This document shows positions 56,926 to 62,034 of a stretch of DNA of 64,000 nt, piece after piece. The notes beneath the pieces were generated by a model. The model saw only the letters and a program-made list of their open reading frames with translations. It ran no database searches and was not told the DNA's origin. The position numbers and the translations under genes are program-made. Within the stretch, counting starts at the first letter, position 1; every line of letters starts with the position of its first letter. Origin of the DNA: Trichosphaerium sp. ATCC 40318 (Eukaryota > Protista > Tubulinea); NCBI GenBank assembly GCA_038496445.1, contig JALMLS010000216.1, positions 248,001 to 312,000 on the forward strand, in the 5' to 3' direction.

Positions 56926-58278
56926 ACGTTCAGCAAACAATTTTCAACTGTGTTTTGACTACAACTTGACTACTATAATAAAAAACGAGCTCCAAACTTG
57001 ACTCCATTGCCTTTCTCAATTACGTCACGAATATTTCTGTATGCCAGTATAGCATCATAACTAAATTTTACAAATAGCAATCGACACGGAATGGTGAGAA
57101 AAAAAACACATCTAAGAATCACGAATACTTGCCAAAAATGGTAAATTGTTAAAGTTGTATGTTAGTTAAACGCTTGCATTGCTGGTAAGGCTACAGATGC
57201 TGAGCCCCATAATGAGGACCATTGCTCGTGGTGAGATTTGTAGTACTCTGTGCCCACCAATACACCAGGCCTCCTAAAAATAGTCAGAAGGGTGCTAACA
57301 ATAAGTTGAAACTTTCCATTCTGTTTGACAACTTCTGTTATTGCGGATGCATATTGTACTTGTCCTTGTGGTGTAAAGGAATAAGGACTTCCCACCCTGT
57401 CACATTATGATATGGATGACTTATTTCTACTATGGATATCCATTGCTTTCCAGGAAATGGTTGGGGTAACTTCTGCAAAGATGCTAAAAAAAAATCCGAA
57501 GCTACAGTTTTTGTAGGACTATTGCGGTGCCACGTGCCTATGCTTTCTAGTTTGCCACCCCAAGCGCCAACCCTATTACCTCAAAAGCAGCACCTCCGCA
57601 ATATTCGCAATTCCTCAATCCCACATCTTTTCCGCCTACTCTACTGTTGTATTACAATTAAAGTGCAACTGAGTACCGTCCATTTTTGCGATGTGAATCA
57701 TTCACATAGGAGTTTCTGCTCCGAAATTATTAGTAACATCAGCCATGAAATGAAACCGGTTCAGACAGTTTGTCGAAGCGCGGAAAAGCTGATTCAATGG
57801 AGTCGTACACCTTTACACAGTGATCACTGTTGAGCTGTCTTACTATGGGGAAGTAAAATTAAAATAAAAACCCACAGCAGACTGTTGGTTAAAATTAAAA
57901 AGGGGATCACTCATAAACCGCCTCGCCATCCTAGTGTTACATTAAAAAGGGACTGTGAGTTGCAACACCAGCTTTTCCAATTATTCCTTTTGGCCCAGGT
58001 AGTTGCGCAATCTGTCTTCTGGCAAACAACAAACCTTCGTTGAGCGTATTAACATTTATCGGTTACTCGCAACTGGGGAGCAATAAAAGGGTCTAAGACC
58101 AAGTCTCGTCGCTACTGATTGTGGCATCTTTCACCACCTTTAACAAACCATTAAAACTCCAAGCGAAGCCAAGAGCGTTGCGATGGTCGGAAAGTTTGAA
58201 CCCTCAGTCCACTTGTAGGATGAAAAGCCGGTCAACTTCTTTCTTGTAGGTTTTTCAAATAACTTGTAGTTGACGACA

Positions 58279-59357
58279 ATGGGTTGCGGTGATAGTAAAC
58301 AACAATCAGAAGGTGGTAAATCTAAGGATTCACTTACAAAGGCCGGGAGACCAAAACATGTAGATTATGATTTTCTTTTTAAAATTCTATTGATTGGTGA
58401 CTCTGCGGTTGGAAAGAGCAGGTACGTGTTAACTTTAGATAACCTCCCAGTCCCAAGTTAAAATTTTATTTTAACTCGCTTACTCTTTTATCTTCTAGTC
58501 TCCTTCTACGCTTCGCAGATCAAGCATTCAATACAAGCTTTATTTCTACCATCGGAGTAGATTTTAAGATACGTACTGTTGACATGGAAGGTAAAAAAGT
58601 TAAACTACAAATCTGGGATACTGTACGTCTTTTATTACGTCATTGTTACCCTTCTAAGTATTCAACTATTTAGGCTGGACAAGAGAAGGTATGCGTAATT
58701 TACTGATTACTAGCTGGGGTTTTTATCTTTTTTACCACGTGATTATCGGTTCGTTCTACAACTGATCACGTGAGAAATAAGATTTTTTGCGAAACACAAA
58801 AAATACATGCGTTTTTCGCCTGTATAACGTACTTCACGTGATCCATCTTCTAAAGTATTTAACTTTAGTTCCGTACGATTACATCGAGCTATTACCGAGG
58901 TGCACATGGAATCATAGTGGTAAGTTTTGTCTTAGATCTTAGAAAAAGACATAATAAAATTCGATCTTATAAACTCAACTACTTCCCAAAAGGTTTACGA
59001 CGTTACAAACGAAAACTCTTTTGAACACGTGGAGTCATGGTTGGAAGAAATAGAAAAATATTGCAGTGGATCAGTTCAGAAACTACTTGTAGGCAACAAG
59101 AGCGATCTACCAAAAGCAGTACCAACAGTACGTAACAAACAAACCTCTCTAAAGTATTTTTTTAAAGTTTTTTTTTTTAACGACAAATGTAACTTGGCAC
59201 GTGACTTATCACGTGTATTCAGGCAACCGCTGAAGGGTTTGCTAACGAGAGAGATGTTTTGTTCATGGAAACAAGTGCAAAGAACAATACAAACGTAGAT
59301 GAGACGTTTTTGAAGCTAGCAAGTTTGATAAAGGCTTCTGGAGCCGCAAAGCAATAA
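58279..59357 (+). CDS. Rab1-like GTPase with N-terminal MGC extension and no C-terminal cysteines (5 introns)
   Basis: [18 protein letters not shown]|[24 protein letters not shown]|AGQEK|[26 protein letters not shown]; ends [13 protein letters not shown]. Confidence 0.92.
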
Positions 59358-59643
59358 GGTTTTTTTTCTTTACCCTGGAAAAACCTTGTACAGACATATA
59401 AAAAATTCGTTGTTGTGGAATTAAAAGAAAAGCTGTAGGTAAACCCATGTACATGTAAAATCTACTTTGTGGTATATTTAACAGTTCACGTATACACTTT
59501 TTTGTTTTTATGGCGGGTGGTACATGCTAGAGAGCAAGTAATAATTCTAAATTGGAATCCAATTTTTTGGTTGTTGGTGATTATTTTATACAAGAACAAA
59601 GAATACCTATGCAATTTTTTTTTGTTACCGTTGCGCTTTTTTC

Positions 59644-61725
<2,082 letters not shown>

Positions 61726-62034
61726 GATGTGGGAAATCGTATTTAGAAAGACTTATATGCCGCAGACTTAACAGGAAAACACTGAATTCACTCCTTACCC
61801 TTTTCAAAACGTACTACGTACGCGTGACTAGATACTATATTTTATAGACCATTCAATGTAAAGATGTTAGCCACATAATATTCACGTGACTACTAGATAA
61901 GGCGATAAAGTCAATTGTATAAACAATAGCCTTAATACCGTTTCTCACTTCAACTCGACTAAGCTGTGCAAGATCTTCAATCGTTCCTTTATTTACATTT
62001 TATTTACAGATATGTACATTTTGCTTGTGGAGCA

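Follow-up and report, generated by a model that had tools for sequence, protein, structure and literature searches.

An expressed Rab1-derived GTPase of lobose amoebae with a predicted N-terminal acyl anchor in place of the C-terminal prenylation site

A gene for a Rab1-like GTPase was found in the window (the whole 64-kb stretch of DNA that was analysed). The gene is expressed and probably belongs, as a fast-evolving member, to a lobose amoeba family of Rab1-derived GTPases whose membrane anchor has been relocated from the C- to the N-terminus. At the sequence level, the prenylation site and the hypervariable domain have been lost, and a conserved dual-acylation motif together with a disordered linker has been gained.

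The gene occupies positions 58279-59357 on the plus strand and is composed of six exons and five introns. All five introns are of the GT..AG type, and splicing by eye gave an ORF of 603 nt encoding 200 aa. Exon 1 (58279-58421) comprises the start codon, the linker, strand 1 and the P-loop GDSAVGKS, and its junction (58421/58499) is present in the transcript contigs X1, X2, X5 and X3. The first codons (58279-58299) specify MGCGDSK, where Gly2 is a predicted N-myristoylation site, Cys3 is a predicted S-palmitoylation site, and Ser6 and Lys7 are favoured flanking residues. They are followed by a Gly/Ser/Lys-rich disordered linker of residues 8-29 (58300-58365), which stands in for the absent C-terminal hypervariable tether. 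Exon 2 (58499-58622) encodes helix 1, switch I, the RabF1 motif IGVDF and the interswitch strands up to WDT, and matches Pfam Ras with an E value of 8e-12. Exon 3 is a 15-nt micro-exon (58674-58688) with AG/GT splice sites; the introns on either side of it measure 51 and 180 nt. It encodes AGQEK, that is, the G3 motif with the catalytic Gln, and contigs X1, X2 and X5 carry its letters inside the 58623/58867 joint. Exon 4 (58869-58919) continues with switch sequence, and exon 5 (58993-59127) encodes strand 4, helix 3 and the G4 motif NKSD (Pfam Ras, E 8e-12); the junctions of both exons are present in the transcript contigs. Exon 6 (59223-59357) encodes helix 4, the G5 motif ETSAK and helix 5 (Pfam Ras, E 1e-6), and ends with the stop codon TAA (59355-59357), which lies five residues past helix 5 with no Cys in between. 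Exon 1 alone gave no Pfam match because the piece is too short. The 1.1-kb gene contains six copies of CACGTG (58736, 58767, 58835, 59026, 59198 and 59210; five of them intronic), and the 64-kb window has 49 versus approximately 7 expected from base composition.

The gene model is backed by transcripts from several sources. Contigs from three studies (X1, X2 and X5), aligned to positions 57900-59700, contain every junction, the micro-exon included, and run past the stop codon without a further joint, X2 to 59471 and both X1 and X5 beyond 59700, so that transcript and genome are collinear for 114 to >340 nt 3' of the stop. A JGI/MMETSP transcript (L001) is 100% identical to the gene across the coding sequence and is collinear with the genome from 58263; therefore, it includes an in-frame stop codon, TAG, at 58267-58269, which is 9 nt before the ATG. 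The minimal 5'UTR defined by the transcripts is 58263-58278, with the X5 contig starting at 58257, and no ATG is present within the transcript 5' of 58279. Moreover, the database protein P0001, predicted from an MMETSP/JGI transcript and recovered with the stop-free frame around exon 5 as query (58936-59295, region 20-64), is 100% identical to the gene product. The RNA evidence consists of assembled contigs rather than raw reads, and rare isoforms may be dropped from such assemblies. These data demonstrate that the gene is expressed and correctly spliced, and they settle the start and stop positions for the dominant transcript. The first-pass annotation, which was made from the DNA letters and called the ATG at 58279 and the stop at 59357 pending RNA data, was thus right on both ends. 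A start downstream of MGC, which it had named as a finding that would overturn its reading, is not borne by the dominant transcript, in which the in-frame TAG precedes the ATG. An alternative last exon supplying prenylatable cysteines was also considered and is rejected for the dominant transcript, given that the transcripts follow the genome without a break across the stop codon.

Downstream of the stop, the stretch 59358-59644 comprises the 3'UTR and an intergenic portion shared with a convergent gene; X1, X5 and L001 align to it collinearly. The convergent gene (59645-61733, minus strand) is intron-rich and encodes an acetyl-CoA acetyltransferase (thiolase), its stop codon being 287 nt from that of the Rab gene. 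Both genes are spanned by single transcript contigs (L001 and X1); therefore, either their 3'UTRs overlap or the assemblers merged two transcripts.

P0001 starts with MGCGDSK and ends with SGAAKQ, as the first-pass annotation had read from the DNA, including Gly2, Cys3 and Ser6 at the start and a C-terminus devoid of a hypervariable tail and of CC/CxC. All five G motifs are present (GDSAVGKS, the switch I T, DTAGQ, NKSD and ETSAK), and the RabF motifs IGVDF, KLQIWDTAGQE, KFRTIT, YYRGA and VVYDVT are readable. The Rab G domain is complete, of the Rab1 type and apparently active. By contrast with this core, the C-terminal Cys motif by which Rab proteins are geranylgeranylated is absent from P0001, and so is the hypervariable domain of Rab1/Ypt1, a segment of approximately 30 residues ending in CC/CxC. 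No Cys was found in the last 60 residues of P0001, nor anywhere after residue 136, and only 24 residues follow ETSAK versus a median of 50 in 125 canonical Rab1 proteins. An AlphaFold model computed with the family alignment as input (mean pLDDT 78.7) shows the standard small-GTPase order of six strands and five helices over residues 32-195, and disorder over residues 4-27 (pLDDT <50). In this model, helix 5 covers residues 181-195, which leaves five of the 200 residues beyond it.

Against solved structures, P0001 scores highest with Rab1A/B (237 bits), followed by Ypt1 (217), Rab10 (212), Rab35 (210) and Rab8A (209). The profile of the family described below gives the same picture, with 330-344 bits for Rab1, 315 for Ypt1 and 267-273 for Rab8, Rab35 and Rab10. 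Because the profile scores Rab1 above Rab8, Rab35 and Rab10, the family is considered to be Rab1-derived, and the Rab1-type signatures reported in the first-pass annotation, whose strings are all present, were correctly assigned. Identity with Rab35 or Rab8 was considered and rejected because of the score gap to Rab1. In a tree built under LG+C20 from rows that included no labelled Rab8 or Rab35, the family and canonical Rab1 group together, separate from the outgroup. No Rab5 appeared in the best 60 solved matches of either P0001 or the family profile; therefore, the anchor switch is taken to be independent of the ARA6/Rab5B group.

P0001 has many relatives with the same architecture. Among thousands of Rab1 proteins, a word search with P0001 returned approximately 33 proteins of 200-213 residues that align over the full query, start with MGC and have no Cys tail. 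A profile search raised the number to at least 59-64 proteins with an MG(x0-2)C start, in most cases MGCGxSK, and no Cys in the last five residues, each counted protein being a cluster at 90% identity. Among 269 fetched proteins, the last five residues are free of Cys in all 59 that start with MGC, MGxC or MGxxC, and such a start is never seen in the 175 that do have Cys there, although these counts are not phylogenetically independent. In the proteins starting with MGC (n=51), position 4 is mostly G (39/51), position 6 is always S, T or G (51/51) and position 7 is usually K (44/51). The PROSITE-type N-myristoylation pattern G-{EDRKHPFYW}-x(2)-[STAGCN]-{P} fits 63 of 64 members, including P0001. 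P0001 has an N-terminal extension of 29 residues ahead of the (Y)D(Y)LFK motif, compared with a median of 34 in the family and 4 in canonical Rab1, and the family has a median of 22 residues after ETSAK versus 50 in canonical Rab1. Approximately 30 residues of tether have in effect been shifted from the C-terminus to the N-terminus. We delimited the family by MG(x0-2)C together with the myristoylation pattern, a linker of approximately 23-45 residues, and an end 20-32 residues past ETSAK without Cys; P0001 falls within these bounds with MGCGDSK, its 29-residue extension and its 24 residues past ETSAK.

All named members of the family come from lobose Amoebozoa. The Tubulinea are represented by Arcella, Difflugia, Flabellula (with several paralogues), Nolandella and Rhizamoeba. 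The members from Discosea, namely Vexillifera, Stygamoeba and Stenamoeba, make up a second subclade. Trichosphaerium is a further named member genus, and its transcriptome contains a typical member, P0091. The first-pass annotation had described an anchor switch on a Rab1 scaffold in this gene. The scaffold and the architecture hold, and the switch goes beyond this gene, being common to a clade across lobose Amoebozoa, and therefore arose in an ancestor. A scan of metagenome contigs with P0091 was dominated by canonical Rab1 and returned no contig of the transcriptome sample from which P0091 derives. The sole NCBI entry in the family, XP_049851497.1 (P0104), is a typical member recorded as a protein of Schistocerca gregaria on a contig of 206 kb; it probably derives from an amoeba, either a contaminant of the locust assembly or a parasite. 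Six proteins of 300-372 aa (P0064, P0065, P0066, P0187, P0188 and P0200) gave top bit scores and lie outside the family; judging by their size and scores, they may contain two Rab domains, produced by tandem gene-model merges or by fusions. Within the linker (approximately residues 9-30), which is otherwise of low complexity, 36 of 64 members carry a short hydrophobic motif, [LVI]x[VI], in forms such as SLNVN and SLTVN (e.g. P0067, P0070 and P0091), where P0001 has SLTK. This motif could be a binding or targeting element.

Within this family, P0001 is divergent. In its core, P0001 shares 67% identity with the family and 66% with canonical Rab1, compared with 79% among family members. In a quick tree from which P0054 and other long rows had not been removed, P0001 fell outside the clade, near the midpoint root. 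Because this placement was treated as long-branch attraction, the long rows were removed, near-duplicates were thinned and the tree was rebuilt under LG+C20. In this careful tree, the N-acyl proteins and P0001 form one clade (96/86), and P0001 falls within the larger subclade A (99/94), where its branch length is 1.12 changes per site versus a median of 0.09. A topology in which P0001 is kept outside the clade was not rejected by the AU test (p 0.42). Six positions conserved to at least 80% distinguish the family from 140 canonical Rab1 proteins. At these positions, P0001 has the family residue four times (S48, F58, F62 and N117), a third residue twice and the canonical residue never, and F62 occurs in 0% of the 140 canonical proteins.

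These results bear directly on an alternative in which the gene gained MGC and lost its tail by itself from a Rab1 of its own lineage, and so mimics the family. The AU result, the quick tree and the nearly equal identities to the family and to canonical Rab1 speak for such an independent convergence. It is nevertheless unlikely in our view, since the site-heterogeneous tree places P0001 in subclade A, the diagnostic residues are those of the family wherever they are of either kind, and P0001 shares with the family the MGCGxSK start, the length of the linker and the point of truncation. Because the careful tree places P0001 within the clade on a very long branch, we interpret it as a fast-evolving, divergent family member, most likely a paralogue.

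The long branch could also mean that the gene is a redundant copy that is drifting towards loss, its product being soluble or not lipidated. P0001 indeed departs from near-invariant family residues in having GDSAVGKS for GDSGVGKS (G43A) and QEK for QER (R94K), and has a two-residue deletion after NKSDL relative to the family consensus. However, none of these departures removes a catalytic residue, and Ala at the P-loop position of G43 is the native state in Rab5. The ORF is intact over six exons, one of them only 15 nt long, the G motifs and the catalytic Gln are kept, spliced contigs occur in three studies, and the full acylation motif has been retained. Decay is accordingly even less probable than independent convergence. 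An annotation artefact, in which the true start lies elsewhere or an alternative last exon supplies prenylatable cysteines, could be hidden by the loss of rare isoforms from assembled contigs, but it is largely refuted and very improbable, as three independent assemblies concur with one another and with the JGI/MMETSP transcript, the TAG stands in frame upstream of the ATG inside the transcript, the transcripts continue collinearly past the stop, and 64 relatives end at the same place.

The preferred reading, a fast-evolving member of an N-acylated Rab1-derived family, leads to a model of membrane attachment. After removal of the initiator Met, N-myristoyltransferase would acylate Gly2 co-translationally, and a DHHC palmitoyltransferase would then acylate Cys3 at the membrane, which would yield a stable two-lipid anchor. 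The N-terminal linker may serve as the flexible tether, a role played by the hypervariable domain in ordinary Rabs. Because geranylgeranyl groups are absent, the protein would not be handled by REP, Rab GGTase or GDI, and it would be expected to stay membrane-bound throughout the GTP/GDP cycle. Its location would be set by acylation together with Rab1-type GEF and effector contacts, and, by analogy with ARA6 and Rab5B, is likely to be the plasma membrane or endosomes. Both the acylation of Gly2 and Cys3 and the independence of REP and GDI are what we infer from the primary structure.

The localisation of Rab proteins is thought to rest on the prenyl/REP/GDI cycle and on GEFs. N-acylated Rabs are natural experiments that bypass this cycle, and they have so far been known only in the Rab5 group. 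In a full-text literature search, whose scope did not extend to the surveys of Elias et al. 2012 and Porfirio-Sousa et al. 2022, N-acylated Rabs were found only in the Rab5 group, and, those two Rab surveys aside, no description of an N-acyl Rab1-like clade in lobose amoebae was found in the literature searched. In the 2018 work of the Elias laboratory, a Rab5-related paralogue is the sole N-acylated Rab cited (PMC5869587), and Kloepper et al. 2012 do not mention acylation (PMC3425129). We tentatively propose, at somewhat less than even confidence in the whole, that these proteins constitute a conserved Rab1-derived subfamily, so far undescribed, whose two subclades span Tubulinea and Discosea and in which a prenylated hypervariable tail of approximately 30 residues has been swapped for a dually acylated N-terminal linker of approximately 30 residues. 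It would represent a second independent GDI-independent Rab beside ARA6/Rab5B, with the present gene as a fast-evolving paralogue. If this is true, the anchor swap is a recurrent evolutionary solution, adopted here on the most conserved Rab scaffold and kept across a large amoeba clade. The family would also offer a test of the part that the hypervariable domain plays in Rab1 activation and targeting, e.g. in TRAPP recognition, because the tether is at the opposite terminus. It would further hint at a trafficking step peculiar to amoebae, which might take place at the plasma membrane or the phagosome.

Compared with canonical Rab1/Ypt1 (RabD in plants), the family has a G domain that is approximately 66-71% identical and has matching RabF and switch/interswitch sequences. 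In contrast to canonical Rab1/Ypt1, it is without the hypervariable domain of approximately 30 residues and without CC/CxC, and it has approximately 30 extra N-terminal residues with MGC. Further differences from canonical Rab1 are two Y-to-F substitutions in switch I, a C-to-S substitution after the P-loop and a D-to-N substitution after strand 4. Rab35 differs from the family in scoring 25-70 bits below Rab1 against P0001 and the family profile, and it retains a prenylated polybasic C-terminal tail. It is nevertheless a possible functional analogue, being a Rab1-derived paralogue that has left the ER-Golgi role (PMC3425129) and that works in endocytic recycling as well as at the plasma membrane.

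The closest parallels in anchoring are ARA6/RabF1 of plants and charophytes and Rab5B of Plasmodium and Toxoplasma, which share with the amoeba family an N-terminal MGC and the absence of a C-terminal prenylation motif. Like the amoeba proteins, they are extra paralogues that exist beside conventional Rabs (PMC3912013, PMC5869587). The MGC of ARA6/Rab5B has been shown to be myristoylated and palmitoylated (PMC3912013, PMC5869587), whereas in the amoeba family both modifications are predicted from the motif and its conservation. For ARA6 and PfRab5B, membrane association needs Gly2 and correct targeting needs Cys3 (PMC3912013), a dependence that bears out the precedent invoked in the first-pass annotation for the MGCxxS signal in Rab5-group proteins. 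The two groups differ in their scaffold, which is a Rab5-group G domain in ARA6/Rab5B and a Rab1-derived one here. Convergence with ARA6/Rab5B, which the first-pass annotation had also proposed, is supported at the sequence level by the absence of Rab5 from the best 60 solved matches. As judged from sequence, therefore, the amoeba family is a separate origin, within Amoebozoa, of the anchor switch known from ARA6 and Rab5B.
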